Positions 3,511 through 57,169 of a stretch of DNA of 64,000 nt are shown here, piece by piece. The notes beneath the pieces are model-generated. The model made no database searches and was not told where the DNA came from. It was given only the letters and a program-made list of their open reading frames with translations. This DNA is from Mytilus edulis (Eukaryota): positions 23,746,001 to 23,810,000 of the forward strand of contig NC_092349.1 in assembly GCF_963676685.1 (NCBI RefSeq), in the 5' to 3' direction. Within the stretch, counting starts at the first letter, position 1. Each line of letters starts with the position of its first letter. A program made the translations under genes and the position numbers.

Positions 3511-4375
3511 TCATTGTTTTTTGACTGGTGCTGGTCTTTGGCTTGGCTGGCCCTGTTTTGATATTTACTGCAATTGAATTTCCCATGACTTTTTGCCTTG
3601 CACAATTTACACACATGAAGATATTTGCAGTATGGCTTTTGACAACCACGTGCCCAATTGAAGTTGTTACATAGCTGTTGACCTTCGTGCCATACAATAT
3701 CTCGGCCTAGAGTATCTCACCCTTTGGATGAGTTTGCAATGGACATGCCATGTTGATTAGAGGTTTTCATTTGACACATAGCTGAAGTATGCAGAGTCGA
3801 ACTGCAGAAAGAACAGGAATTTACTTTGGAACCAGCACAAATTTTTTGGCGTAATTCAAAGTCACCCTTCGACCAATCAATTTTGAAATTATGCTGAAGA
3901 AGCATAGTTGCACATTTAGCAAAAAACATTCTGTGATACTCGAAAAATTTGTATGGCCAAATATTAACTGTTTCTACAATGTGGGCCAGATAAAGTTCCA
4001 ATTCCTCTCCCCTAGATGGGAAGCCTAGCTCATAATCCTTTTGAAACGGCCAAAAGCAATTATAAATTCATCTAGGGACAAGTTCCTTATCAAACTGTCA
4101 TCATATTCTGATGTTTTCTTCTTAATGGGAATTTCATAGTTTGGTATCAATAGTGAGTTTAAATTCACATCTTTACCTGTGATGATATTCTGCCTGATTT
4201 CCGGCGAAATCATATCTGTGTCGCTGATGGATGAAGCCGGCACACCAAACGATTTAACCGAGTATACTGGCATTCTGTACGAGTCGTTTTGGCCAAGTTG
4301 GGCGAGACGGTTTGTTGACCGGGCCGGTTCGGCCATTTGTGTTGTTGTAGAATGAGGCATGAAGGATGCCGCCAT
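3511..4375 (-). pseudogene. Gag-like protein of the YR retrotransposon (two stops, one frameshift)
   Basis: Reconstructed ...IITGKDVNLNSLLIP...EFIIAFGRFK...FFEYHRMF...KIDWS...CSFCSSTLHTSAMC...LCNNFNWARGCQKPYCKYLHVCKLCKAKSHGKFNC. Lesions at ~4025-4018 and 3719-3717. Confidence 0.8.
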
Positions 4376-9559: not shown

Positions 9560-10050
9560 TTTCGACATCATATAATGAAGTAAACCGAAACACAATATAG
9601 GAATGCATGCACATAATATAATGACACAATCACATCATATAAAGATGGTTGCACATAATAAAAGGGACAATGCACATCATATAAGGATGTTTGCACATAC
9701 TATATGGATATTTGTACATTATATAAGTACATTTGCACTTCATATCAGTATATTTGCACATCACATAATGATGTTTGCACATTATATAATGAAGTTTGTA
9801 CATTATATAATGAAGTTTGTACATCATATAATGATGTTTGTTCATCATATAATGATGTGTGTACATCATATGATGATGTTTGCACATCATATAATGATAT
9901 TTGCACATCATATAAGGATATTTGCACATCATATAAGGATATTTGCACATCATATATAATGACAAATGCATATCATATTAAGGTGTTTGCACATCATGTA
10001 TGATGATAAGTGCACATCATATAAAGGTAAATGCACATCATATAATGCAA
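9560..10050. repeat. 21-bp minisatellite (TTTGCACATCATATAATGATG)
   Basis: About 20 tandem units. It accounts for the heptad-periodic ORFs called at 9603-10003. Confidence 0.92.
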
Positions 10051-17300: not shown

Positions 17301-17884
17301 AAGGTCACTAGCCAATTTTAAATCCATCTATTGATGTTTGCGAGATCTCTATTCAAGTTGATTGCCGATTATTGGGGATCATATACTATCAAATATAAAC
17401 TTGTAACATCAGCAGACAACTTAATAGTGGACTGTACAATGTATGTCAGATATAATATCATTGATAAATAAAAATATATATATATGAGGTCCCAGGATCG
17501 ACCCCTTGGGTAAACAAGTCTTTATATTGCCCCTCTTGGATGATACAATATTTATTACAACCCTTTGCTTTCTATCAGATAGATGACTATTACTCATGCC
17601 AAAATAGAACCTTTAATGCCGATAGCTTCTTATTTCTTCAACAACCACTTTTGCCAAACTTTTCGGGCTCGGTAAACAACATCACTACAACATATAGAAT
17701 GTGCTATTTCATATCACATAAGATGTCTACAGGTACAGCAAATTTTGTAAACTAAATCGTTGTATCTATTTATGAATTTAATAAAGGTTTTAAGTGATTA
17801 GTGGTTACGAAATCCCTGACTCAATAATTCACCAGTAATACATAGATTACGTTCATTAAAATAAAAACAAGCCACTAAAATCAT

Positions 17885-18130
17885 GGACACAGCTAACGAG
17901 TTGAGGTATATAAACATCGTAAGGCGTTGTCAAAGGAACATCGCCGTCCAAAAAACGAAAAATTAACAATATGGAGAGCAAAAATCTTCTCTTTTGTCGT
18001 AAATTTTCGTGCCGAGTTTCTGTATAAAAATGACTTATTTTTATCTAGGAATGGACAGTTATTACTGTTGATATTTGATTTATTTAAAAAATGTTCATTT
18101 AGGTACATTTCTGCATTTCTAGTCTTTTCA
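17885..18130 (-). mobile_element. Relic of a Naiad/Penelope-like RT C-terminus
   Basis: NKSN...CPFLD...DKREDF..IVNF..LDGDVPL...YDVYIPQLV, homologous to ~23830-24020. Confidence 0.75.
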
Positions 18131-18445
18131 GGGAACTTTTTTTATTATTCAACGAAAACAAATAACCAAGATAACGGTAACATAGGTGTTGTTTAATTTA
18201 TCAATTAAATGGAACTTAGACGGATCTTTACGGATTTTCTCCCTTTTTCTTATTTACAAACTTTAGAAACCAGGTTATCTCAAGCTTATGTATTTTATCG
18301 AAACACTCCAAAATAGAATAGTGCGTTAAAACAAGCATAACCTATGCAACTGTATGTGGCGTTATTAGTGTTATTACACCTCGAGAATTAAACATAAATT
18401 TCATATTTGTTTTGTTCATTTTTTTTTTGGTTTTTTTTTTTGCAG

Positions 18446-21400
18446 AGCAGTTCGACAATCGCATGGAACGGTGGAAGAAGGATGATCAACAGTTTGTTAG
18501 TACTGAAGCAGAGAAACATGTCATGGATAAACTTTTGACAGAAAGTACAGTTACCCTAGTTGGAAACTCGGGCATTGGAAAAAGTTTTCTTTCTAAACAC
18601 ATTGCCCTCAAAATGAAGGAAAATGGTTATACTGTAATTCCATGTAGTAAACCTGAAGATATTGGTAAATGGTTTAAACATAGTTGGAAAACATTATTTG
18701 TCTATGATGATGTCTGCGGCCGTTATACTCTTAATCAACAAATTTACAATGAATGGAAACAACACTTGGATCACATCAAATTTCTTCTTACAGACCAATG
18801 TTGTAAAATAATATCTACATGTAGATTGGAAGTTTTCAAAGATGAACGTTTTAGCAATCTCTCTATTTTTAAAATATGCAACATCGATTTAAATTCACAA
18901 GAATTCAAACTTAGTGCCACTGAAAGAAATACTTTAGCTGAAGTGTACTTTAAGGACAATGCTGATGAAGTAAAGGAATTGTCAGAAAAATATGACTTTT
19001 TTCCACTTTTATGCAGCCTATATCATAAACAAAACCTTCAGAAGAATGTTATCATTAGCTCGTTTTTTAACAATCCTTTTGATTTTTTTAAAGATCAAAT
19101 TGTACAAATGTATTGGGAGAGTGATGCTGGTAAGATGCAGTATTGTAGCTTAGTCCTTTGTGTGATGTTTAACAACACATTAACAGAAGAAAATTTGTCC
19201 ACAAAAGATAAAAAGATAAGAACAGTAATAAAAGATTTACTAGAAGAATGTGAACTGATTAAAGGAACATCCATCAAACGTTTAAAAAAATCGCTTGAAA
19301 CACTTGAAGGTACCTATGTGGTCAAGGAGGATAACAAATACAAAATAATCCATGATAAGTTGTTTGATTTCCTGGCTAAGTTCTTTGGGGACAAGATGTT
19401 ACAGCTCTTTTTGTATCATGCTAATACAGATTTTATTAAAGAGAGATTTCTATGGAAGATAACAGATAACATGGGCCCAGAAACAGAGTTTGTGATAAGA
19501 ATACCTGATAACGGTATAAATAGGTATATAGAAAGATTGCTGAAAGACTGGGAGAACGGATTCGTGATCAATGTATGTGTCAACAGAAACATGAAATCTA
19601 CTATATTTACAGAAAAATTTGTAACACATTTAAATCAACTTGATCAACCAAAGCAACAGGAACTTGTTTGTACAAAAGATATTCACAGTAAAGATATAGC
19701 CCTTTCAGGAAGCTGTTATATCGGTACTGTTGATCTTGTCAAATGGTTGATCAGTAGGAATAGTGACATTAATTATAGTAGAGAGGATGGTTGTTTCTCT
19801 TTATTTTGGGCAAGTCAGGAAGGACATGTTGATGTTGTTAAAGAACTGTTACAACATTCAGCTGATGCCAATAAGTGTGACAATAAAGGTGTATCGCCTC
19901 TGTATATAGCAAGTCAAAATGGACATGTTAATGTTGTAACAGAACTATTATCGCATTCAACTGATGTCAATAAATGTGCTAATGATGGCATATCACCACT
20001 TAATATTGCTTCTAACAATAACATGGTTGAGGTTGTACATGTCCTTCTTCAGTTTGTTCATATTAAAATTGATTTATGTGATGAAAACGGATGTTCTTCA
20101 CTTTATCAAGCAAGTCTGGAAGGACATATTGATGTTGTTAAAGAACTGTTAAAACATTCAGCTGATGTCAATAAATGTGACAATAATGGTGTATCACCTC
20201 TGTATATAGCAAGTCAGAATGGACATGTTGATGTTGTTAAAGAATTATTACAACATCCAGCTGATGCCAATAAGTGTGACAATAAAGGAGTATCACCTCT
20301 GTATATAGCAAGTCAAAATGAACATGTTAATGTTGTTAAAGAACTGTTACAACATTCAGCTGATGTCAATAATAAATGTCCTAATGATGGTACATCACCA
20401 CTACAGATTGCTTCTTACAACAACATGGTTGAGGTTGTACAAGTCCTTCTTAAGTGTGCCCATATTAAAATTGATTTATGTGATGAAAAAGGATGTTCCT
20501 CACTTTATCGAGCAAGTCAGAAAGGACATATTGATGTTGTGATAGAACTGTTACAACACTCAGCTGATGTCAATAAATGTACTATTGATGGTATATCACC
20601 ACTACAGATTGCTTCTAACAACAACATGGTTGAGGTTGTACAAGTCCTTCTTAAGTGTGCCCATATCAAAATTGATTTATGTGATGAAAACGGATGTTCT
20701 TCACTTTATCGAGCAAGTCAGGAAGGACATATTGATGTTGTTAAAGAACTGTTACAACATTCAGCTGATGTCAATAAATGTGACAATAATGGTGTATCAC
20801 CTCTGTATATAGCAAGTCAGAATGAACATGTTAATGTTGTTAAAGAACTGTTAAAATATTCAGCTGATGTCAATAAATGTACTAATGATGGCACATCACC
20901 ACTACAGATTGCTTCTAACAACAACATGGTCGAGGTTGTACAAGTCCTTCTTAAGTGTGCCCATATTGAAATTGATTTATGTGATGAAAACGGATGTTCT
21001 TCACTTTATCGAGCAAGTCAGGAAGGACATTTAAGTGTTGTTGAAGAACTGTTACAACATCCAGCTGATGTCAATAAAAGTAACATAAATGGTGTATCAA
21101 CTCTGTGTATAGCAAGTCACAAGGGACATGTTAATGTTGTTAAAGAACTGTTGCAACATTCAGCTGATGTCAATAAATGTACTAATCATGGCACATCACC
21201 ACTACAGATTGCATCTACCAACAACATGGTTGAGGTTGTACAAGTCCTTCTTAAGTGTGCCCATATTAAAATTAATTTATGTGATGAAAACGGATGTTCT
21301 TCACTTTATCGAGCAAGTCATGAAGGACATATTGATGTTGTTAAAGAACTGTTACAACACTCAGCTGATGTCAATAAATGTACTAATGATGGTACATCAC

Positions 21401-21483
21401 CACTACAGATTGCTTCTAACAACAACAAAGTTGAGGTTGTACAAGTCCTTCGTAAGTGTGCCCATATTAAGATTGATTTATAA
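18446..21483 (+). CDS. STAND (nSTAND3-like) P-loop NTPase with ~18 ankyrin repeats; large exon, C-terminally truncated
   Basis: Polypyrimidine tract and TGCAG acceptor ending at 18445. Walker A VTLVGNSGIGKS, Walker B LFVYDDVCG, IIHDKLFD motif. Ankyrin repeats G.SPL.IAS..GH..VV..LL run from ~19690 to the stop at 21481-21483. Confidence 0.9.
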
Positions 21484-21586
21484 GATGAAAACGGATGTTT
21501 TCACTTTATCAGGCAAGTCAGGAAGGTTCATATTCTGGACGCCAGTCTTTGCTCCTTTATAATATAATTCACTAACAAAAAAAATT

Positions 21587-24386
21587 ATGAAGCTTAGAAA
21601 TGGAAAAATATTAAATACTAAACTTGTTCAAAGGGTATCTACACGTCTCAATCTTCAAAATCGGTTATCTAAAAATACTACCATCGCTAACATTTTTAAC
21701 AATAAAAATCGTGGTAACCCTTCTATCGATAAGTGTCATGCCAAAAAATGACTTACATGTCCCCGTCTTTCCACCAACAATACGGTTAGGTCCACGTTTA
21801 ATGGTCGCATATTTTCTTTGAATTTTGAAACTGATATAACTTGAAAAACAAACAGTATTATTTATTTACTCACATGAAACAAACCGGGATGTGGTATTCA
21901 GTACGTAGGAGAAACTGGACGGTATTTATCTAAACGCACACAAGAACATCTGTATCGTTTTAAAAGTCCCAATAAATTCAAAAGTATCATTTACCAACAC
22001 CTTTAGAAGCACAACCATCATTTTAAATATTTAACAGTTCAACCTTTAGAAGTAGTAAATAAGCAGCCTGGTGAATCTCATTCAAAGTTTGTACGATCAC
22101 GGAAAATAATTGAATTAAATTGGATTAAAAAATTACAGACAGTCTACCCTCTCGGTCTTAATCATAATATCATGGGAATTGGTAATATATCTAGAACCGA
22201 TTCCGTTAACATTTTGGATATAGTTTCTAAAACTGTTCGTAAAAACCGTTCTCACGGTCGTAGGACAAATCGCAATCAAAGAAAATTTCGGACCAATCAT
22301 ACCAATATTTCGGACCTAATTTCTATTTCAAAAAACAACGGCAGACATTATCTGTTAACAAAACTGTGTTCATTACAGGTTAATAAGTTAAATAAAATTT
22401 TGGAGGATTGCAACACAATTTCATATAGCAGTTCTTAGTATGAAATTGTTCAAATTATTATGGCATATTGTTATTCTAAACTATTTCCCAAAATTGATCG
22501 CCCTGAAGATCATAAAAAACATTTTATTAAAATAAAGTATGTCAATAAAGGTTTTGATTTTGTAAATATTGCCGGTATATTTAACGACCATTCTGTTAAG
22601 GACATCGTTCAAGACCGGGAGTTAAAATCATTCCTCAGTAAAGGACCTAAATATCGTCCCCCGTCAATTATTAATTGGAATGAGTGTCGTAATATCATCC
22701 ACGACTCACTCCATACTTACTGTATGAAATGGATAAAACGGGAAAAAGCTGACAAAAAATCTTTGGACTCTTTTTTTAATTCAGTAATGAAGATAGTTGA
22801 TATACGTATTCAACATTTGAAGAACATTTTACTCTAAACAATAACCACAATAAACCTATTTCTCGTATCAAACATAAACTAAAAGAACTAGCCAAGAAAT
22901 TTGTTTTTGTCCCGGCCGATAAAGCTGCTAATAATATTATTATTGTTTGACGTAAATTTTACATTGAGGTTCTGAAAAAAGAAATCACCAATTTACCAAC
23001 ATTCCAACTGACTCCATTTTCAGAAAACGACATCTGTAACAAACATAAACTTTTAGCTACCGCTTTACAAGCAGAGCCAAATACAATGAAAGTCCCAACT
23101 ATGTACTGTCTTCCGAAGCTACACAAAACACCTTACAAATATAGATTTATTTCGTCTTCAAGCCATTGTTCCACTACTAAATTGTCTATTCTTCTTACCA
23201 GCACACTTGGTACAATTAAAAACCTGATAATAAATTGTTCAAATAAGGCCTTCGAAAATAGTGGAATTAATTACTTTTGGAGTGTCAAGAACTCGTTGGA
23301 AGTACTTGATAAATTGCATGCTTATATTTGTTATTTTAAATCTGTTCAAAGTTTAGATTTTTCTACCCTGTATACCACATTGCCTCACATTCTCATTAAG
23401 AAAAAAATCACACACCTAATTAAATGGGCATTTAAAAAGTCAGAATATGAATATATATATGTTCAAACTCTTTAAGGTCATTTTTTAGTTGCAATAAACA
23501 AAAAAACTATGTCAATTGGACATGCTTTGATACTATATATGCCCTTGAATTTTTACTAGATAACATTTTTGTTCGCTTTGGGGATTCAGTATATCGTCAG
23601 ATTATCGGAATTCCAATGGGGACTAACTGTGCACCACTTATTGCGGACCTGTTTTTGTATTGCTATGAGTTACAATTTATGACAAAAATAAGCAATGACC
23701 CATCGAAACAACATCTGATAAACAAATTTAATAATACTTTTAGATATTTGGATGATATTTTGGCTCTCAATAATGACGACTTCAGTATGTATATTAAAGA
23801 AATTTATCCTGTTGAATTTACTTTAAATAAAGCTAATACTAACAATGACCACTGCCCTTTCCTCGATCTCGATATCTATATCACTAACGGAAAGCTGAAT
23901 ACTAAAATTTATGATAAAAGAGATGATTTTTCATTTCCTATCGTTAATTATCCATTTTTAGATGGTGACGTTCCCTTGTCACCATCTTACGGTGTTTATA
24001 TATCTCAACTTGTACGATTCGCTCGTGTATGTAACAATGTTTTAGATTTTACCGAGAGAAATTTATGTATTACTGAAAAATTATTACACCAGGGTTTTCC
24101 ATATCACAAAACATTTACTAAATTTTATCATCGGTATAAGGACATCATTCGTAAATATAGCTCAACATGCAGACTTCTTATACGTTCAGGTATTTCACGT
24201 CTAATTTTTTATGGAAATATTCAATATAAAGCACAAAGGTGTCAGTATTCACCTCAAAAACTAACAAAACCTTTGAATAGACTTATTAAGAAGGGATATA
24301 GTTACGATACTGTTGTCAGGTCATTAAAGATTGCATATTTTGGCGTTAATATTGATTCACTTATAGGGTCTTTGCATCGGAATTAA
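21587..24386 (+). pseudogene. Naiad EN-RT polyprotein, predicted selenoprotein (four in-frame UGA); this copy is disabled
   Basis: ATG at 21587. TGA at 21749, 21842, 21875 and 22948, all at Cys-type sites. Lesions: TAG at 22004 and 22436, apparent deletion of the CxC linker at ~22600, frameshifts at ~22818 and ~23455. True stop is TAA at 24384-24386. Confidence 0.88.
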
Positions 24387-24437
24387 ACACATTTATTCAA
24401 AAACCAGTTGTTGGCATGACACGGGTTATTTTCTACT

Positions 24438-24502
24438 AATATATGTTATGATGGTATGGTACTAAACCCCTAACGGGAAGGATTGTGCCTGATGTTTATA
24501 TG
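24438..24502 (+). promoter_or_regulatory. Type 2 SECIS element in the Naiad 3' UTR
   Basis: ATGAT (24448) - GGTATGGTACT - AAA (24464) - CCC taac GGG mini-stem - GGATTGTGCC - TGAT (24490). This gives the GA/GA core, an ~11-nt helix II and an apical AAA, ~60 nt after the stop codon. Confidence 0.85.
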
Positions 24503-25025
24503 ATGAAATCATAATCTTTCAGTCAGTTTAATTGAAGTCTGGAGCTGGCATGTTAGTTAACTGCTAGTAGTCTGTTGTTATATATGTATTATTGTCATTT
24601 TGTTTATTTTCTTTGGTTACATCTTCTGACATCAGACTCGGACTTCTCTTGAACTGAATTTTAATGTGCGTATTGTTATGCGTTTACTTTTCTACATTGG
24701 CTAGAGGTATAGGGGGAGGGTTGAGATCTCACAAACATGTTTAACCCCGCCGCATTTTTGCGCCTGTCCCAAGTCAGGAGCCTCTGTCCTTTATTAGTCT
24801 TGTATTATTTTAATTTTAGTTCCTTGTGTACAATTTGGAAATTAGTATGGCGTTCATTATCACTGAACTAGTATATATTTGTTTAGGGGCCAGTTGAAGG
24901 ACGCCTCCGGGTGCGGGAATTTTTCGCTACATTGAAGACCTGTTGGTGACCTTCTGCTGTTGTTTTTTTCTATGGTCGGGTTGTTGTCTCTTTGGTACAT
25001 TCTCCATTTCCATTCTCAATTTTAT

Positions 25026-25508
25026 GTTGATGTTTTAAAGGAACTGTTACAACATTCAGCTGATGTCAATAAAAGTAACCTAAATGATGCATCACCTCTG
25101 TATATAGCAAGTCAGAATGGACATGTTGATGTTGTTAAAGAACTGTTACAACATTCAGCTGATGTCAATAAATGTACTAATCATGGCACATCACCACTAC
25201 TGATTGCTTCTAACAACAACATGGTACATGTCCTTCTCCAGAGTGTTCATATCAAAATTGATTTATGTGATGAAAACGGATGTTCTTCACTTTATCAAGC
25301 AAGTCAGGAAGGACATTTGAATGTTGTTGAAGAACTGTTACAACATTCAGCTGATGTCAATAAAAGTAACATCAATGATGCATCACCTCTATATTTAGCA
25401 AGTCAGGAAGGACATGTTGATGTTGTTAAAGAACTGTGACAATAATGGTGTATCACCTCTGTATAAAGCAAGTCAGAAGGGACATGTAAATGCTGTTAAA
25501 GAACTGTT
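25026..25508 (+). pseudogene. Orphaned ankyrin-repeat exon segment between the two retroelements
   Basis: Same repeat units as the main exon (VDVLKELLQHSADVNKS...), with deletions at ~25225 and ~25437. Confidence 0.9.
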
Positions 25509-45730: not shown

Positions 45731-45835
45731 AACTGGATTTTTGAAACAACTTTAAATAAAGTTAATATTAAAAATCCTTTATTCAGTCTTGATATGATTA
45801 TACATGTATCATATTCGGAAACTCAATACCAAAAT

Positions 45836-46180
45836 GTATGACAAAACAGATGATTTTTTATTTTCTATCATTAATTATCTATTTTGTTCCCTTGTCACTA
45901 TCATATGATGATAATAAATCCCAACTATTAAGGTTTGCTCGTTTGTGTGCAACGTATACGTTTTAAGTGAGAGAACTTGATGTATTACTGAAAATTTATT
46001 ACACCAGGGTTTTCTATATCACAAACTTTTCAAAACATTTGCTAAATTTTATTAGCGGTACACCGACATCATTCGTAAATAAAATTGAACATGCAGACAA
46101 CTTTTACGATTTGGTATTGAACTTTGTATGTTGATATTTTTTACAAAACACTACAATGTCGGTTGTCGGTTTTCACCTCA
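45836..46180 (+). mobile_element. Relic of the Naiad RT 3' region, closely related to 23910-24260
   Basis: TGTATTACTGAAAATTTATTACACCAGGGTTTTC...AAACATTT.CTAAATTTTAT...GACATCATTCGTAAAT is shared with the 21.5-25 kb element. Confidence 0.75.
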
Positions 46181-46199: not shown

Positions 46200-49100
46200 G
46201 AGTAGCAGCATAGGTTTGCATCACGAATGTTGAAAACTAGTATTGGAATAAGTGTATTTGTTTATTATGATTTACTTTTTCAAATTTCCTGCTAAAACCT
46301 GATCCGAACAAATATTTTTGAGTGAATCATTTTTAACCAGCTGAAATTATAAACTTTTAAACTTTTCAGAGCATTCTTTCAAAAACATGTTTTTCTTCAT
46401 TTTGTCAATATTTAGCGATGAATAGTTTCAAATTACACTATTATGCAAATACTGTGGTCCTATAATTGATCAATTTGTCAATAAACAACCGTCTCTAGGT
46501 TTTTGAACAAAGAAATATAGATAATAAGATCATATACAAAAGTGTATTGTATTAATTTAAAACAATAGTGACCAATAGAGCAATCATTTCAATAAGTATT
46601 TAATATCTTTTGTTACTTTGATTCGCACCTTTATTTATATTTGTTCACGCGGCATAATAATTGCACACAATTCATAATTAATTGTGTTATTGTTTCACAA
46701 AATTGCGTACTATTCAAATACAAAGAAGGTACATTCGGTAATTATTTTGTAGTTTTTTTGTCTTAAAGCTTTCATGTGATGTAATTGCATAAAAGAAAGT
46801 ATGCACTTTCAAACTATCGACCGGATAAAAAGATATATCCGTGGACAACTGAGTAATCATTTTGTATTGAATGCATTAAACAAGATCTACATGGGAAAAT
46901 CGGGAATACAGTCAAGTACTGCTTATTTATGTATAAGGTTAAAAGATGTTATATGTATCTTATATCGACATGCCTGTTTATGTACTTATCGAAATAAATA
47001 TCCGGAATGCATTTGTGTGGTTTTCATTTAAAACCACGCATGTGTACTGAATGTCTTCATACGAAGGATAGCCGTTTAACATCGATTTAACCTGCACTTA
47101 AGTCTTTTAAATACTTGGATATTCGAATACCGTATTTTAAAAAATAATTCAGAGATAAACAAAAGGATTAAGTAAATAAAGACAACAGTAGTACATTTTG
47201 TATACAGCTGTTTATTGTTCATAAAGAGATTTTAATGTGATCAAGAAGTATGAGTTATTTTAAAAGTTATAGTTACGATTAATTTTCATTTGACGATAAC
47301 TTAATGAATGCAAGCGGATTTTATAACAAAAAGTCAAACAGTAAACCAAGACCGTTATTCGTCCGACGAGTATCAGTAACAAGAATATTGAAAACTAGTA
47401 GTGAAATAAGTGTATTTATTTGTCATTATTTATTTTTTCAAGTTTTCTGCTAAAGGTTTCTCATAACAAATTTGTCTGAGTGAATCATGTTTATCCAACT
47501 GAAGTTATAAACTTTTAATCTTCTCAGAGTAAAATAGTCTTTCAAAAACATGTATTTTCTTCATTTTGTCAATATTGAGCGATGTGTTTATAAGTAATTC
47601 AATGTAAGCTAAACATAATAATAAAGTGCTGGAGACAATGAGTAGTTTGAAATTACACCAATATGCAAATAATGTGGTCCCATAACTGACCAATTTGTCA
47701 ATAAACAACCGTCTCTAGGTTTTTGAACAAATAAATCTAGATAATAAGATCATATGCAAAAGTGTATAGTAATATCTTAAACAATAGTGACCAATAGAGC
47801 AATGATTTCAATAAGTATTTAATATCTTTTGTTACTTTGATTCTCAGCTTCATTTATAATTGTTCACGGAGCATAATAAATGCATACAATCTATAATCAA
47901 TTTTGTTAATGTTTCACAAAATTGAGTACTATTCAAACACAAAGAAGGTACATTGGGTAATCATTTTGTAGCTATTTGTCTTAAAGCTGTCATGTGATAT
48001 AATTGTATAAAAGAAAGTATGCAATATCACGCTATTGACCGGATAAAAAGATATATCCTTAGACAGCTGAGTAACCATTTTGTATTGCATGCATTAAACA
48101 AGATTTACATGGGATAATGGGGAATACGGTCAAGTACTGCTTATTTATGTATAAGGTTAAAAATATTATATGTGTCTCATATCGGCATGCCAGTTTATGT
48201 ACTTATCGAAATAAATATCCGGAATACATTTGTGTGGCTTTATTTAAAACCACGCATGTGTACTAAATGTCTTCATACGACAGTCAGGGGCATTACTTAA
48301 ACAAGTAACAATTAAAATTACCTATACAAGTAATGTTGAAAACGAGGCCAATTTAAATATAACTTATACAAGTTATTTTTCTAAATATTATTTTTATAGG
48401 TGTTTAAGAATACAGATTTTACTAGCTTTAAATAATTTTCACAGTTATCTGGTTATTTTTCCCTTGATATATAAAAACTAATTCTTCAGAAACACTAATT
48501 AACTTTCCGACGCACTTACCTTTCATACCGACGCTTCTGGGTCAAAGATTGGTCTCTTGGGACTATCAAATTATCATTTTCCTCTAAAATCTTGAAGGTA
48601 GACTGATATAAATAGATTGATACTTGTGAATTAATTAAGACCTGAAGTTATTTATAATTTGTAACCTAATTCAATTATGTGCTTTAATAGGTAAGTGTAA
48701 TTGCTATTTTTTTTCAAAAATGTTAAAAATAACTTATTCAAGTAATATTTTTGTCATTGTTTTCAAAGTAACCCTTTATTTCCATACTCCTCTCAAATCT
48801 GATAAATTCTTTATTTTATCATATAAAATGGTGTTTAAAATCATGAAAACTACATTTAGTCTATGTTTCTATTGAAAATCAAAATAACTCTATAAGTAAT
48901 TTTATTATTTTTAAAATAAAAAATTACTTATATAAGTAATTAAAAAAAATAACTTGTTTAAGTAACGCCCCTGACTGTACGATGGATAGCCGTTTAACAT
49001 CGATTCAACCTGCACTTAAGTCTTTTGAATACTTGGATATTCGAATACCTTCTCTTAAAATTAATTTAGAGATCAAAAACATGGTTAAGTAAATTAAGAC

Positions 49101-52100
49101 AACAGTTGTACATTTTGTATACAGATGTTTATTTTTTATAAATAAATTTTAATGTGATCAAGAAGTATTAGTTATTTTAAAAGTTATAGTTACGATTAAT
49201 TTTCATTTGATGATAACTTAATAAATGCAAGCGAATTTTTTTAACGAAAAGTCAAAAAGTAAACCAAGATCGTTATTCGTCCGACGAGTATCAGTAACAA
49301 GAATATTGAAAACTAGTAGTGAAATAAGTGTATTTATTTATCATTATTTATTTTTTCAAATTTTCTGCTAAAGGTTTCTCTCAACAAATGTGTCTGAGTG
49401 AATCATTTTTAACCAACTGAAGTTATAAACTTTTAATCTTCTCAGAGTAAAAAAGTCTTTCAAAAACATGTTTTTTCTTCATTTTGTCAATATTGAGCGA
49501 TGAGTTTATAAGTAATTCAATTTAAGGTAAACATAATAATAAAGTGCTGGAGACAATGAGTAGTTTGAAATTACACCAATATGCAAATAATCTGGTCCCA
49601 TAACTGACCAATTTGTCAATAAACAACTGTCTCTAGGTTTTTGAACAAAGAAATCTAGATAATAAGGTCATATGCAAAAGTGTATAGTAATATCTTAAAC
49701 AATAGTGACCAATAGAGCAATGATTTCAATAAGTATTTAATATCTTTTGTTACTTTGATTCTCACCTTCATTTATAATTGTTCACGGAGCATAATAACTG
49801 CATACAATTTATAATTAATTTTGTTAATGTTTCACAAAATTAAGTACTATTCAAACACAAAGAAGGTACATTGGGTAATTATTTTGTAGCTATTTGTCTT
49901 AAAGCTTTCATGTGATATAATTGTATAAAAGAAAGTATGCACTATCACGCTATTGACCGGATTAAAAAGATATATCCTTAGACAGCTGAGTAATCATTTT
50001 GTATTGCATGCATTAAACAAGATCTACATGGGATAATGGGGAATACGGTCAAGTACTGCTTATTTATGTATAAGGTTAAAAGATGTTAGATGTATCTTTT
50101 ATCGACATGCCTGTTTATTTACTTATCGAAATAAATATCCGGAATGCATTCCTGTGGTTTTATCTAAAACCACGCATAATATGTACTGAATGTCTTCATA
50201 CGAAGGATAGCCGTTTAACATCGATTTAACCTGTACTTAAGTCTTTGAATACTTGGATATTCGAATACCTTATTTTGAAAATAATTTAGAGATACAAAAA
50301 AATGGTTAAGTAAATAAAGACAAAAGTAGTACATTTTGTATACAGCTGTTTATTGTTCATAAAGAGATGTTAATGTGATCAAGAAGTATAAGTTATTTAA
50401 AAAGTTAGAGTTACGATTAATTTTCATTTGACGATAACTTAATGAATGCAAGCGGATTTTTTAACAAAAAGTCAAAAAGTAAACCATGACCGTTTTTCAT
50501 CCGACGAGTAAGCAACAGGAATGTTGAAAACTAGTAGTGAAATAAGTGTATTTATTGATCACTTTTTTTTTTAAAACTTTCAGCTAAAAGTTTCTCTACA
50601 CAAAAATGTCTGAGTGAATCATTTTCAATCAACTAAAGTTATAAACTTTTTAACTTTTCAGAGTAGTCTTTCAAAAATATGTTTTTCTTCATTTTGTCAA
50701 TATTTAGCGATGTGATTAAAAGTGATTCAATTTTAAGTAAACATAATTATAAAATTCTGGAGACAATGCATATTTTAAAATTACAATTATTTGCAAATAC
50801 TCTGGTCCCATAACTGACCAATTTGTCAATAAACAACCGTTTCTAGGTTTTTTAACAAAGACATCTAAATAGTAAAATCACATACTAAAGTGTGTTGTAT
50901 TAATGTAAAACAAAAGTGATCAATAGAGCAATGATATCAATAAGTATTTAATATCTTTTGTTACTCTGATTCTCACCTTCATTTATAGTTGTTCACGCGG
51001 CATAATAACTGCATACAATTCATAATTAATTTCGTTATTGTTTCACAAAATTGCGAATTATTAAAACACAAAGAAAATATTTATTCGGTATTTAATTTGA
51101 AGTTATTTCATTGAAAGCTTTCATGTGACATATAATTGTATAAAAGAAAGTATGCACTATCAAGCTATTGATCGGATCAATCGATAAACCATTTCACAGC
51201 TGGGTTAACATTTTGAAAAAATGCATTATACAAAATTTACAGGGTCAAGTACTGCAAATGTTGTTTAGCAGGGTTAAATATGGGTAAAACATGTTATATG
51301 TATCTTATATCTACATATCTGCTAGTGTAATTATCATAATACTTACATTTGTGCGGTCTTATTTAAAACCAAGCATGTGTACTAAATGTTTTCATACGAA
51401 GGATAGCCGTTTTTGTAGTGGAATAATTGTATTTATTAATCATTATTTACTTTTTTCAAACTTTTTGATAAAAGTTTATCTTGACAAATATTTCTGAACT
51501 AATTATTTTGAACCAACTGAAATTATCATAAGAGAAAGATTTCACCCTTTTTCACATGCTTGCACATTGACTTTGCTTTCAATTCAAAATTCAAAAATTA
51601 ATATTTTGAACTTTTCGGAGCATTCTTCCAAAAACTTTTTTTTCTTCTTTTTGTTAATATTGAGCGATGTGTTTATGAGTGATTCCATTTTAAGTAAACG
51701 TAATAAATTAGGTTCTGGAGACAATGCATAGTTTAGAATAACACCAATATGCAAATACTGTGGTCCCATTATTGGTCAATTTGTCTCTAGGTTTTTGAAC
51801 AAAGAAATATAGATACATGTAATAAGATCATATACCAAAGTGTATTGTATTAATTTAAAACAATAGTGATCAATAAAGCAGTGATTTCAATAAGTATTTA
51901 ATATCTTTTGTTACTTGGATTCTCACCTTCTTTTATAGTTGTTCAAGCGGCATAATAACTGCATACAATTCATAATTAATTTCGTTATTGTTTCACAAAA
52001 TGGAGTACTATTCAAACACAAAGAATTGTGTAGCTATTTGTCTTAAAGCTTTCATGTGATATAATTGTATAAAAGAAAGTATGCACTATCAAAATATCGA

Positions 52101-55100
52101 TCGGATAAATAGATATATCCTTGGACAGCTGAGTAACCATTTTGTATTGCATGCATTAAACAAGATCTACATGGGATAATGGGGAATACGGTCAAGTACT
52201 GCTTATTTATGTATAAGGTTAAAAGATGTTATATGTATCTTATATCGACATGCCTGTTTATTTACTTATCGAAATTAAATATCCTGAATGCATTTGTGTG
52301 GTTTTATTTAAAGCCACGCATAATATGTACTGAATGTCTTCATACGAAGGATAGCCGTTTAACATCGATTTAACCTGCACTTAAGTCTTTGAATACTTGG
52401 ATATTCGAATACCTTATTTTAAAAAAAAAATTAGAGATACGAAGAATTGGTTAAGTAAATAAAGACAAAAGTAGTACATTTTGTATACAGCTGTTTATTG
52501 TTCATAAAGAGATTTTAATGTGATCAAGACGTATAAGCTATTTAAAAAGTTAGAGTTACGATTAATTTCCATTTGACTAATAACTTAATGAATGCAAGCG
52601 GATTTTATAACAAAAAGTCAAAAAGTAAACCATGACCGTTTTTCATCTGACGAGTAAGCAACAGGAATGTTGAAAACTAGTAGTGAAATAAGTGTATTTA
52701 TTTATCACTTTTTTTTAAACTTTCAGCTAAAAGTTTCTCTACACAAAAATGTCTGAGTGAATCATTTTCAATCAACTAAAGTTATAAACTTTTTAACTTT
52801 TCAGAGTAGTCTTTCAAAAATATGTTTTTCTTCATTTTGTCAATATTTAGCGATGTGATTAAAAGTGATTCAATTTTAAGTAAACATAATTATAAAATTC
52901 TGGAGACAATGCATATTTTAAAATTACAATTATTTGCAAATACTCTGGTCCCATAACTGACCAATTTGTCAATAAACAACCGTTTCTAGGTTTTTTAACA
53001 AAGACATCTAAATAGTAAAATCACATACTAAAGTGTGTTGTATTAATGTAAAACAAAAGTGATCAATAGAGCAATGATATCAATAAGTATTTAATATCTT
53101 TTGTTACTCTGATTCTCACCTTCATTTATAGTTGTTCACGCGGCATAATAACTGCATACAATTCATAATTAATTTCGTTATTGTTTCACAAAATTGCGAA
53201 TTATTAAAACACAAAGAAAATATTTATTCGGTATTTAATTTGAAGTTATTTCATTGAAAGCTTTCATGTGATATATAATTATATAAAAGAAAGTATGCAC
53301 TATCAAGCTATTGATCGGATCAATCGATATACCATTTGACAGCTGGGTTAACATTTTGAAAAAATGCATTATATAAGATTTAAAGGGTCAAGTACTGCAA
53401 ATGTTGTTTAGCAGGGTTAAATATGGGTAAAATATGTTATATGTTTCTTATATCTACATATCTGCTAGTGTAATTATCATAATACTTACATTTGTGCGGT
53501 CTTATTTAAAACCAAGCATGTGTACTAAATGTCTTCATACGAAGGATAGCCGTTTTTTGTAGTGGAACAATTGTATTTATTAACCATTATTTAATTTTTT
53601 CAAACTTTTTGATAAGAGTTTATCTTGACAAATATTTCTGAACTAATTATTTTGAACCAACTGAAATTATCATAAGAAAAGGATTTCACCCTTTTTCACA
53701 TGCTTGCACATTGACTTTGCCTACAATTCAAAATTCGAAAATTAATATTTAAACTTTTCGGAGCATTTTTCCAAAAACTTTTTTTTCTTCTTTTTTGTTA
53801 ATATTTAGCGATGTGTTTATGAGTGATTTCATTTTAAGTAAACGTAATAAATTAGGTTCTTGAGACAATGCATAGTTTAGAATAACACCAATATGCAAAT
53901 ACTGTGGTCCCATTATTGATCAATTTGTCTCTAGGTTTTTGAACAAAGAAATATAGATACATGTAATAAGATCATATACCAAAGTGTATTGTATTAATTT
54001 GAAACAATAGTGATCAATAAAGCAATGATTTCAATAAGTATTTAATATCTTTTGTTACTATGATTCACACCTTCATTTATAGTTGTTCACGGAGCATAAT
54101 AACTGCATACAATTTATAATTAATTTTGTTATTGTTTCACAAAATTGAGTACTATTCAAACACAAAGAAGGTACATTGGGTAATTATTTTGTAGCTATTT
54201 GTCTTAAAGCTTTCATGTGATATAATTGTATAAAAGAAAGTATGCACTATCACGCTATTGACCGGATAAAAAGATATATCCTTAGACAGCTGAGTAACCA
54301 TTTTGTATTGCATGCATTAAACAAGATATACATGGGATAATGGGGAATACGGTCAAGTACTGCTTATTTATGTATAAAGTTAAAAGATATTATATGTGTC
54401 TCATATCGGCATGCCTGTTTATGTACTTATCGAAATAAATATCCTGAATACATTTGTGTGGTTTTATTTAAAACCACGCATGTGTACTAAATGTCTTCAT
54501 ACGATGGATAGCCGTTTAACATCGATTCAACCTGCACTTAAGTCTTTTGAATACTTGGATATTCGAATACCTTCTCTTAAAATTAATTTAGAGATCAAAA
54601 ACATGGTTAAGTAAATTAAGACAACAGTAGTACATTTTGTATACAGATGTGTATTTTTTATAAAGAAATTTTAATGTAATCAAGAAGTATTAGTTATTTT
54701 AAAAGTCATAGTTTCATTTGACGATAACTTAATAAATGCAAGCGGATTTTATAACAAAAAGTCAAAAAGTAAACCATGACCGTTTTTCGTCCGACGAGTA
54801 ATAGCAACAAGAATGTTGAAAACTAGTAGTGAAATAAGTGTATTTATTTATCATTATTTTTTTTTTAAACTTTCAGCTAAAAGTTTCTCTAAACAAATAT
54901 TTCTGAGTGAATCATTTTCAACCAACCGAACATGCTGAAGTTATAAACTTTTTAACTTTTCAGAGTAGTCTTTCAAAAACATGTTTTTTTTTTTTTTTTT
55001 CATTTTGTCAATATTTAGCGATGTGTTTAAAAGTGATTCAATTTTAAATAAACATAATTATAAAATTCTGGAGACAATGCATATTTTAAAATTACAATTA

Positions 55101-56277
55101 TTTGCAAATACTCTGGTCCCATAACTGACCAATTTGTCAATAAACAACCGTTTCTAGGTTTTTTTAACAAAGACATCTAAATAGTAAAATCACATACTAA
55201 AGTGTGTTGTATTAATGTAAAACAAAAGTGATCAATAGAGCAATGATATCAATAAGTATTTAATATCTTTTGTTACTCTGATTCTCACCTTCATTTATAG
55301 TTGTTCACGCGGCATAATAACTGCATACAATTTATAATTAATTTCGTTATTGTTTCACAAAATTGCGAACTATTAAAACACAAAGAAAATATTTATTCGG
55401 TATTTAATTTGAAGTTATTTTATTGAAAGCTTTCATGTGACATGTAATTGTATAAAAGAAAGTATGCACTATCAAGCTATTGATCGGATCAATCGATATA
55501 CCATTTGACAGCTGGGTTAACATTTTGAAAAAATGCATTATACAAGATTTACAGGGTCAAGTACTGCAAATGTTGTTTAGCAGGGTTAAATATGGGTAAA
55601 ATATGTTATATGTATCTTATATCTACATATCTGCTAGTGTAATTATCATAATACTTACATTTTTGCGGTCTTATTTAAAACCAAGCATGTGTACTAAATG
55701 TCTTCATACGAAGGATAGCCGTTTTTTGTAGTGGAACAATTGTATTTATTAACCATTATTTATTTTTTTCAAACTTTTTGATATAAGTTTATCTTGACAA
55801 ATATTTCTGAACTAATCATTTTGAACCAACTGAAATTATCATAAGAAAAAGATTTCACCCTTTTTCACATGCTTGAACATTGACTTTGCCTACAATTCAA
55901 AATTCGAAAATTAATATTTTAAACTTTTCGGAGCATTTTTCCAAAAACTTTTTCTTCTTCTTTTTTGTTAATATTTAGCGATGTGTTTATGAGTGATTCC
56001 ATTTTAAGTAAACGTAATACATTAGGTTCTGGAGACAATGCATAGTTTAGAATAACACCAATATGCAAATACTGTGGTCCCATTATTGATCAATTTGTCT
56101 CTAGGTTTTTGAACAAAGAAATATAGATACATGTAATAAGATCAAACAAAAGTGTATTGTATTAATTTAAAACAATAGTGATCAACAGAGCAATGATTTC
56201 AATAAGTATTTAATATCTTTTGTTATTTGGATTCTCACCTTCATTTAAAGTTGTTCTCGCGGCATACTAACTGCATA
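46200..56277. repeat. Non-coding tandem array of ~1.2 kb (A) and ~0.95 kb (B) units with higher-order AB dimers
   Basis: The anchor TCTAGGTTTTT recurs at ~46.49, 47.71, 49.63, 50.84, 51.79, 52.99, 53.93, 55.15 and 56.10 kb. Partial orphan copies at ~42.22 and ~44.8 kb. Confidence 0.93.
48281..48977. mobile_element. 697-bp MITE with 26-bp TIRs and a 5-bp TSD
   Basis: CAGTCAGGGGCRTTACTTAAACAAGT at both ends. TACGA is duplicated at 48276-48280 and 48978-48982. The empty site CTTCATACGATGGATAG is at ~54495. Confidence 0.93.
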
Positions 56278-57169
56278 TATTTAATGACGATATCGGAACC
56301 ATTGTCCGGACGCCTTAATTTTCTAAATAAACATAAGAATGGTTGACAAATGCGGCTATGCATTACACCTATAGGACAAAAAGGCATGATGATTAAATTA
56401 CGAAAGGAAGAGAAGCGACACATATATGAGGTCATAGCTTTACTTTCAAATCTAAAAATTCTAAAACGTGACACATTCAAATTTTTCTAAACTTTGCTTG
56501 ACAAGAAAAAGCATCGACCGTGTCTCATAATTGTTTTTGCGAATACAGATATAGTGTTTAGATATTTTACACGGTCAAATGACCATAACTATACACTTGA
56601 TTAATGAGTTTATCCCCGAAACGCCCTGCTATAGTTGAACTGGTCTTTGATAAGCGACCGGATTAAACTCCGCCCATTCATGAAATAAATCATAGCGATG
56701 TGGTAAATGTGAATCTTTTTCACGTAAATATAATAAATTAAGTTCAAGACTAAGTGATTGTCTTACAATTACACCATAGTGCATAAATGTGGTCCCGTAA
56801 TGCACGTTATATGAGCGGTAATTGTATGTTTACAAAACCTACTTTAAACTTAACGATGTTGAATATAATTTGTATGTTAGATAGAATAGTTATCAAAGGT
56901 ACCAGGATTATAAACGCATAAAATATGCCGATGTATAAAAACTGGTTACATGGTATATATATTGCTCGAAGTTTCTCAATGGTTGGTCAAGTTTCTAACA
57001 AACAAATCTACCATTTTATCCACAGAAACTCATATAGGTTTTTTTTTAACCGGTTAAAATGATCTCATGATTTTATTTTTCATATGTGTCAACTCATTAA
57101 GAAAAATGCTTAGGTGTATTAAAATCACTAGTCATAAGATTATAAAACGCCTTTCTTAAAAAGAATTAA

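Follow-up and report, generated by a model that had tools for sequence, protein, structure and literature searches.

Introduction

Naiads are Penelope-like elements (PLEs) that carry an endonuclease N-terminal to a telomerase-like reverse transcriptase (RT), CX2-5CxxC and CCHH fingers and a CxC motif in the linker (PMC8557442). Four Naiads that encode selenocysteine (Sec) have been described, two from clams and two from spiders, all with a selenocysteine insertion sequence (SECIS) in the 3′ untranslated region (UTR) (Craig et al., 2021; PMC8557442). The clam families have UGA in three places, namely the first Cys of the CCHH finger, the Cys ahead of GIY-YIG and the position eight residues after the DKA motif (DKA+8), and in three of the four families the SECIS lies 1-21 nucleotides (nt) past the stop codon (PMC8557442). 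Naiads of mussels have been described as Cys-type only, with an insert of five amino acids (aa) in the CX2-5CxxC finger (PMC8557442). The deiodinases of Mytilus coruscus are canonical selenoproteins with UGA and SECIS (PMC8481496), and bivalve selenoprotein P is very rich in Sec according to Baclaocos et al. (2019), as cited in PMC8557442. Here we analyse a 64,000-nt stretch of the Mytilus edulis genome (assembly GCF_963676685.1, contig NC_092349.1, positions 23,746,001 to 23,810,000 of the forward strand), which we call the window and whose positions are used throughout. It contains, at 21527-25025, a Naiad-clade element that is very probably the dead copy of a Mytilus family whose single open reading frame (ORF) of ~1002 codons can be translated only if four UGAs are decoded as Sec.

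Results

The element and its reading frame

The element is a single copy of 3499 nt on the + strand; an intact unit measures ~4.02 kilobases (kb). A preliminary description of this DNA had placed it at 21527-25025, and both borders are upheld by the break in a host ankyrin-repeat ORF and by the point (25024) at which reads from other copies diverge. For comparison we used 80 loci from metagenome contigs (numbered L001 to L080), which were found by a scan with an alignment of RT relatives and carry no taxon. Identity to the intact copy L001 is 96.5-96.8% at the nucleotide level along the full length, and the window ORF aligns with that of L001 in four pieces (tblastn, 94-97% identity). In the RT part the window copy is 98% identical to L001 and 96% to L002; nucleotide identity to L002 is 91-93%. 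The parts of the element are as follows.

21527-25025, + strand: degenerate, 5′-truncated copy of a putative Sec-type Naiad (L001 identity, interruption of the host ORF, read divergence at 25024).
21527-21586, + strand: remnant of the 5′ UTR; the upstream ~300 nt of L001 and L002 are missing.
21587-24386, + strand: one ORF for endonuclease, linker and RT, split over three frames in this copy (translations; tblastn to the L001 ORF).
21725-22231, + strand: GIY-YIG endonuclease region with a CX4[U]xxC finger and a CCHH finger (alignment to endonuclease regions of Cys-type Naiads).
22951-24383, + strand: RT part of the ORF, 3′ of the fourth TGA (96% identity to protein P0001; YLDD, GIPMGTNCAP and FDFSTLYT motifs).
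24384-24386, + strand: true stop TAA; L001-L005 also end in TAA here.
24503-25025, + strand: 3′ tail of the element (97.6% identity to L001, 90.7% to L002, 69.8% to L003).

Four in-frame TGAs fall on conserved cysteines

Read from the ATG at 21587, the first three TGAs lie in frame 1. The fourth lies in the third frame, which is reached after a 1-nt deletion near 22815, and it follows PADKAANNIIIV.

21749-21751, + strand: TGA 1, second Cys of the CX2-5CxxC finger; TGA in the window copy, L001, L002 and L004, TGT or TGC in the 12 other covering loci.
21842-21844, + strand: TGA 2, conserved Cys directly before the GIY (here IIY) motif; TGA in 7 loci, Cys in 15, another codon in 1.
21875-21877, + strand: TGA 3, first Cys of CCHH, which lies between GIY and YIG; 10 loci have TGA and 13 have Cys.
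22948-22950, + strand: TGA 4, Cys at DKA+8; 23 loci have TGA, 42 have Cys and none has another codon; a position named by Craig et al. (2021).

All four had been proposed to occupy Cys positions, the third being the first Cys of the CCHH motif. Alignment to Cys-type Naiads bears this out at each site, and the endonuclease alignment places the third as described. Column counts were made on 81 aligned sequences (the window copy and the loci); with the ORF of the best locus as query, tblastn aligns the window copy and most loci along nearly all of the protein. Only 10 columns of the ~1000-residue protein are Cys or TGA in at least 90% of these sequences, and the four TGAs of the window copy are all among them. 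In the four columns 124 of 125 aligned codons are TGA, TGT or TGC; only L069 departs from this, with GAT. When all loci are pooled, 51 of 59 in-frame TGAs occupy Cys columns, compared with 1 of 28 TAA or TAG codons (Fisher p = 2.5e-14). Loci with 28-45% identity have Cys at all four sites. The distribution is nested, with TGA at DKA+8 in 23 loci, at CCHH in 10, before GIY in 7 and in the CX4CxxC finger only in the window copy, L001, L002 and L004. The open 1003-codon ORF of L004 (62% aa identity) has the same four TGAs and a fifth at the first Cys of CxC, a site that is TGA in six further loci. The four UGAs thus replace conserved cysteines, which presumably bind zinc or have a structural role.

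Within the TGA-bearing clade, L003, L007 and L008 have TGT or TGC at DKA+8 yet have kept a SECIS; two of them, L003 and L007, read TGA at the first CxC cysteine. Sec and Cys thus seem to interchange in both directions within this clade, as judged from the alignment. In-frame TGAs at variable, non-Cys columns were seen in L017 (column N819) and in L011 and L012 (column D922), in ORFs that are otherwise open. That of L017 lies in an RT6(D)-like stretch and resembles the single non-Cys UGA reported for Naiad_Scon (PMC8557442).

TGAs are shared between copies and other lesions are private

The TGAs could be ordinary inactivating mutations of a Cys-type Naiad that came to lie on cysteines by chance or through mutational bias. 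The window copy does carry several other lesions and is beyond doubt a pseudogene, and a single base change turns TGT or TGC into TGA. However, the same four TGAs are found in copies that are otherwise intact. L001 and L002 each have a 1002-codon ORF that is free of TAA, TAG and frameshifts and contains exactly four TGAs, at the positions seen in the window, and the ORF of L004 agrees. Relative to L004 synonymous sites are saturated (proportion of synonymous differences, pS, ~0.77), and the twelve bases of the four TGAs are unaltered. TAA and TAG lesions show no preference for Cys columns, whereas four of four TGAs lie on the 10 conserved-Cys columns among ~1000.

Other copies were also compared through DNA contigs (two species labels), RNA contigs and raw RNA reads aligned to the element. 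None of the best-supported 40 of 397 differences falls on a TGA. The TGAs are likewise kept in RNA contigs: one over 21527-21993 has 12 differences in all and another over 22602-23171 has 9, and none of them touches a TGA. Against this background we regard ordinary mutation as hardly conceivable. Chance placement of TGAs and plain decay of a pseudogene were both rejected on the intact ORFs, the enrichment on Cys columns and the saturated divergence.

The following lesions set the window copy apart.

22004-22006, + strand: copy-specific TAG; nearly all DNA contigs and RNA reads of other copies have a sense codon, and L001 and L002 are open.
22436-22438, + strand: copy-specific TAG; nearly all other copies differ and have a sense codon, and L001 and L002 are open.
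22599-22603, + strand: in-frame deletion of 201 nt (67 codons) that removes CxC; the L001 alignment skips from 1517 to 1718, and an RNA contig has loose ends at 22599 and 22602.
22814-22816, + strand: 1-nt deletion and frameshift; other copies have an extra T after 22815, and the translation changes frame.
23450-23455, + strand: 2-nt insertion in an (AT)n run and frameshift; 50 of 88 RNA reads and both RNA and DNA contigs are without the 2 nt.
24106-24107, + strand: in-frame deletion of 9 nt; RNA reads and an RNA contig have 9 extra nt, and DNA contigs have matching loose ends.

Because of the TAGs, the frameshifts, the 201-nt and 9-nt deletions and the loss of ~300 nt of 5′ UTR, this 5′-truncated copy is dead: six lesions have arisen since insertion, and it has no coding capacity. 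The preliminary description had called the copy inactive and had read two nonsense TAGs and a genuine TAA stop, all of which stand. It had omitted the 201-nt deletion, the 2-nt insertion, the 9-nt deletion and the 5′ UTR loss. Its expectation that other copies would share the TGAs and lack the TAGs and frameshifts was borne out by L001, L002 and the DNA and RNA contigs.

A SECIS follows the stop codon

A hairpin with SECIS features lies downstream of the stop.

24440-24502, + strand: SECIS of form 2 (extra mini-stem), with AUGA at 24448-24451, the apical AAA at 24464-24466 and the 3′ UGAU at 24490-24493 (Rfam SECIS_1; covariance model R1; covariation).

The Rfam model SECIS_1 matches it with 24.6 bits (E = 0.13 over 3.8 kb and 0.023 over the 3′ UTR alone). 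Of 20 TGA-bearing loci (68.6 kb) the same model hits 12 (26.6-38.8 bits), always on the + strand just 3′ of the stop, and of 20 Cys-type loci (67.1 kb) it hits none, a difference with p = 4.5e-5. At 38.8 bits the SECIS of L018 is the sole match in the family above the Rfam threshold. In an alignment of the 12 elements UGA, AAA and GAU are invariant, and the UGA is preceded by A except in L018, which has GUGA. Compensatory changes occur in 15 of the 18 predicted pairs. Standard pairs fill 91% of cells, compared with 41-53% when the partners are slid by 1-3 columns, and 0 of 500 shuffles match the observed values. The covariance model R1, built from this alignment, gives the window SECIS 77 bits and detects a SECIS in 17 of 22 loci of the TGA clade, compared with 0 of 42 others (counted where the 3′ flank is 150 nt or longer). 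Since R1 was trained on the TGA clade, the Rfam result serves as the independent test. L004 and L005 have weak SECIS scores but fold into an AUGA...AAA...GA hairpin (z = -4.1). The SECIS match of the window copy lies 53 nt past the TAA. Across its family the distance from the stop is 48-51 nt and in L004 and L005 ~130 nt; in the other subclade the SECIS abuts the stop. A SECIS after the stop had been predicted for this DNA. The Rfam match, the covariation and the occurrence in TGA-bearing lineages only agree with that prediction, and it is on covariation and lineage restriction, not on folding energy, that we consider the SECIS to be real.

An alternative is that the UGAs are recoded without Sec, for instance by a near-cognate Cys, Trp or Arg tRNA, and that the hairpin serves a different purpose, for example in marking the template 3′ end for the RT. 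Sec insertion is deduced here from sequence, and the 3′ UTR of a PLE is expected to carry signals for RT recognition; the tail is indeed conserved (69.8% identity to L003). On the other hand, the hairpin has the AUGA...AAA...GA signature that the independently built Rfam model recognizes, above threshold in L018, and it is confined to lineages with UGA at Cys sites. Generic readthrough would also leave the restriction of UGA to conserved Cys columns unexplained. We therefore consider recoding of this kind very unlikely.

Selection acts on every segment of the ORF

L001 and L002 differ at synonymous sites with dS = 0.27. The ratio of nonsynonymous to synonymous divergence (dN/dS) between them is 0.04 before TGA 1, 0.00 from TGA 1 to TGA 3, 0.10 from TGA 3 to TGA 4 and 0.11 after TGA 4. 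Since the ratio is low in each segment, all segments around the UGAs are under purifying selection and therefore translated. The corresponding ratio of nonsynonymous to synonymous proportions (pN/pS) is 0.25 for the window copy vs L001, compared with 0.10 for the two intact lineages, which fits some neutral decay of the window copy after insertion.

These values bear on the possibility that the UGAs are real stops and that the element makes short separate products, namely an N-terminal peptide of 54 residues and downstream ORFs expressed by reinitiation or from internal starts. Gene callers do predict ORFs bounded by UGA, such as P0001 (435 aa) and ORFs of 417-426 aa running from TGA 3 to TGA 4. 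However, TGA 1 to TGA 3 are spaced by 30 and 10 codons within the endonuclease fingers and between GIY and YIG, so that a single catalytic domain would be split. Purifying selection on the tiny segments between these UGAs is strong (dN/dS at most 0.04, L001 vs L002), and the accompanying SECIS would have no explanation. We rate this possibility as highly improbable.

In a tree of the RT a branch with 99% support separates all TGA-bearing loci from 47 Cys-type loci. The tree is unrooted and gives the split only; for this reason no order of TGA gains is claimed from it.

The element belongs to the Naiad clade

The element had been described as a Naiad PLE with the endonuclease N-terminal to the RT. 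This assignment stands: the domain order can be read directly, within one ORF, in the window translation and in L001 and L002, and the element aligns with Cys-type relatives along its whole length (tblastn and protein alignment). The endonuclease regions of Cys-type relatives match the Pfam GIY-YIG family PF01541 in 7 of 7 cases (best E = 1.1e-8), and a profile of these regions matches phage T4 endonuclease II (2WSH; E = 0.0017). Pfam searches with pieces of the window element and with the inter-UGA segments of L001 gave no significant domain. The fingers of the window copy read C-x4-[U]-xx-C and [U]-x4-C...H...H, in columns that are Cys or TGA in 94-100% of loci. The CxC linker motif is missing from the window copy, where it falls in the 201-nt deletion. 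L001 and L002, both intact, have the motif, and its two columns are kept in 50 of 51 and 52 of 52 loci; CxC is thus a feature of the family that the window copy has lost.

The RT-side piece of the window copy finds thousands of relatives. The closest is P0001, with 435 aa and 96% identity, which corresponds exactly to the ORF that starts at the first Met 3′ of TGA 22948. Pfam RVT_1 matches weakly (E = 0.066 for the window piece; 9 of 19 relatives, best E = 2.4e-4), and a sequence-profile search of the PDB with the RT alignment gave no meaningful match. An AlphaFold model of P0001 has a mean predicted local distance difference test (pLDDT) score of 77. Its best Foldseek matches are the human, Candida and Tribolium TERT proteins (E = 6e-8 to 3e-5), which rank above retron and group II intron RTs. 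The model supports an RT of the PLE type, predicted to be telomerase-like.

Naiads are characterized by the lack of a canonical hammerhead ribozyme, and in agreement with this no ribozyme family was found by Rfam at E ≤ 10 in the element, including a 661-nt search of the tail, or in 20 related loci. Copies in tandem or in pseudo-LTR arrangement are a further trait of the clade. The contig ends of L001 and L002 overlap (L001 1-77 equals 4018-4094, 77 nt; L002 1-145 equals 4032-4176, 145 nt). In both contigs the 3′ end of the element directly abuts the 5′ UTR, as assembled head-to-tail tandem copies would; the window copy is solitary. Part of the 5′ UTR is 84% identical between L001 (139-440) and L002 (3684-3997) and is lacking in the window copy.

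Insertion site

The element lies in sense orientation within an ankyrin-repeat exon of a STAND-ankyrin gene.

18412-21526, + strand: host gene 5′ of the insertion, STAND NTPase and ankyrin repeats (ORF list; best protein matches).
25026-25439, + strand: continuation of the host ankyrin repeats (repeat families D3 and D4 extend across the insertion).

The best matches of the interrupted gene are all Mytilus STAND-NTPase/ANK/CARD proteins, with at most 83% identity, in accord with the earlier suggestion that the genome is mussel-like. The junctions show 2 nt of microhomology on both sides and no clear target-site duplication; ~2 nt of the target seem to have been lost at insertion. The host ORF stops at a TAA (21481-21483) 44 nt 5′ of the insertion, where sister repeats have TGT. 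This host gene copy looks pseudogenised, or else the ankyrin repeat that holds the TAA has decayed.

Reads, expression and abundance of the 3′ end

DNA sequencing runs (three species labels) hold 71-76% of the element's words and six RNA runs from three studies hold 37-52%. Raw RNA reads span the whole element at low depth and on both strands. Transcription of the element is therefore plausible. Read depth climbs 10-30-fold towards the 3′ end, as is expected of 5′-truncated, target-primed copies. The last ~340 nt of the tail (24686-25025) have 3-5 times the read depth of the SECIS region and 20-30 times that of the 5′ part of the ORF; other families, or non-autonomous elements, may carry the same tail. 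A stretch of P0305, a Mytilus edulis gene model named 'sulfotransferase 1A1-like', is 84% identical to part of the endonuclease-linker ORF and represents either exonisation or an annotation artefact.

Other features of the window

Two related PLE RT fragments lie at 45741-46118 (+) and 17775-18088 (-), 73% and 68% identical to element positions 2286-2668. Neither has an endonuclease part, and the R1 model finds no SECIS in them. A large tandem array with units of ~2.1 kb (sub-periods of ~950 and 1210 nt) occupies 46200-56400 and begins right after the first of these fragments. Satellite-like tandem repeats of 36-37 nt (at least 24 copies) and of 21 nt (14 copies) occupy 1-1300 and 9569-9998 respectively.

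Discussion

The kind of element described here was published in 2021 from clams and spiders. The Mytilus family is new and combines the three clam sites with one finger site of the spider type. The preliminary description had left open whether the family was already reported: its kind was, and the literature searched contained no report of Sec Naiads in mussels nor any later report of Sec Naiads. Compared by published description, the clam families (PMC8557442) resemble it in encoding a GIY-YIG endonuclease followed by the RT within a single ORF, in carrying a SECIS in the 3′ UTR, in living in a bivalve and in having UGA at the first Cys of CCHH, the Cys before GIY-YIG and DKA+8. They differ in host, here Mytilus, and in the fourth UGA at the second Cys of CX2-5CxxC, which has been reported only in a spider family. 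The SECIS of published Sec Naiads, called 'type I', overlaps the stop or lies 1-21 nt past it, whereas that of the window family lies at ~50 nt and is of form 2 by alignment to Rfam. In the spider families Naiad_Sdum and Naiad_Smim (Stegodyphus; PMC8557442) UGA occurs in the CX2-5CxxC finger (at the first, or first and second, Cys), before GIY-YIG and at DKA+8, giving three or four UGAs per ORF. Unlike the Mytilus family, they have no UGA in the CCHH finger and belong to an arthropod lineage judged independent by the authors.

Cys-type Naiads (those of Mytilus galloprovincialis in PMC8557442, and L024-L080) have the same domain order, motifs and ten conserved Cys columns, but TGT or TGC at all sites and no detectable SECIS. 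The published mussel Naiads further differ by the 5-aa finger insert, in place of which the window family has the short CX4 spacing. Selenoprotein P also carries several UGA-Sec codons in one mRNA that are decoded processively. It is a host selenium-transport protein without sequence relation to the element and typically has two SECIS, whereas a single SECIS was found here.

Several points weigh against a family with four Sec codons. We infer both Sec in the protein and SECIS-dependent readthrough from the nucleotide data. The score of the window SECIS is below the Rfam gathering score of 35, and its minimum-free-energy fold is no better than that of shuffled sequences (z = -0.96). The TGA-clade loci L006, L023, L065 and L070 have no detectable SECIS, and in L058 the match lies ~590 nt past the inferred stop. 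The RNA evidence is weak, as the raw reads are of low depth and unstranded or from both strands, and the RNA contigs come from metatranscriptomes, where DNA carry-over is possible. Lastly, the comparison with genomic copies covers 40 of 397 differences, those with the best support, and minority states at the four TGA sites therefore escape direct view.

If the four UGAs are indeed decoded as Sec, the mRNA of an intact element would recruit host SBP2, eEFSec and tRNA-Sec through its single SECIS, and the host Sec machinery would decode all four processively. The full-length protein would then perform target-primed reverse transcription, the mode used by other PLEs. How much active protein is made, and hence transposition, would depend on selenium supply and on Sec-decoding capacity.

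The gradation across the clade, the relative with five predicted Sec codons and the putative Sec site in CxC go beyond what is listed in PMC8557442. We tentatively propose, at slightly less than an even chance for the proposal as a whole, that the Sec Naiads form an old clade, monophyletic and diverse, in which the window family is the tip richest in Sec. UGA would have been gained stepwise on five of the ten conserved cysteines, up to five per ORF, starting with DKA+8, followed by CCHH and the site before GIY and then by the CX4CxxC finger or CxC, with reversions to Cys now and then. The SECIS would have shifted from abutting the stop to 50-130 nt downstream. SECIS-bearing 3′ ends would far outnumber full-length copies and would scatter ready-made SECIS through Mytilus genes. 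If this is true, the clade provides a natural series for the study of Cys-to-Sec transitions and of the origin of new selenoproteins.

Until now selenoprotein-encoding transposons comprised four families from one paper (PMC8557442). The present work adds a well-supported family in Mytilus, a model and aquaculture genus, with natural intact copies and a covarying SECIS, and shows that the trait is clade-wide and graded, with one to five predicted Sec codons. Such elements escape ORF finders and receive pseudogene annotations. Their 3′ ends, which are abundant, could pass for SECIS elements of host genes or turn into them, and the output of a very abundant retroelement may be tied to the selenium supply and Sec-decoding capacity of its host.

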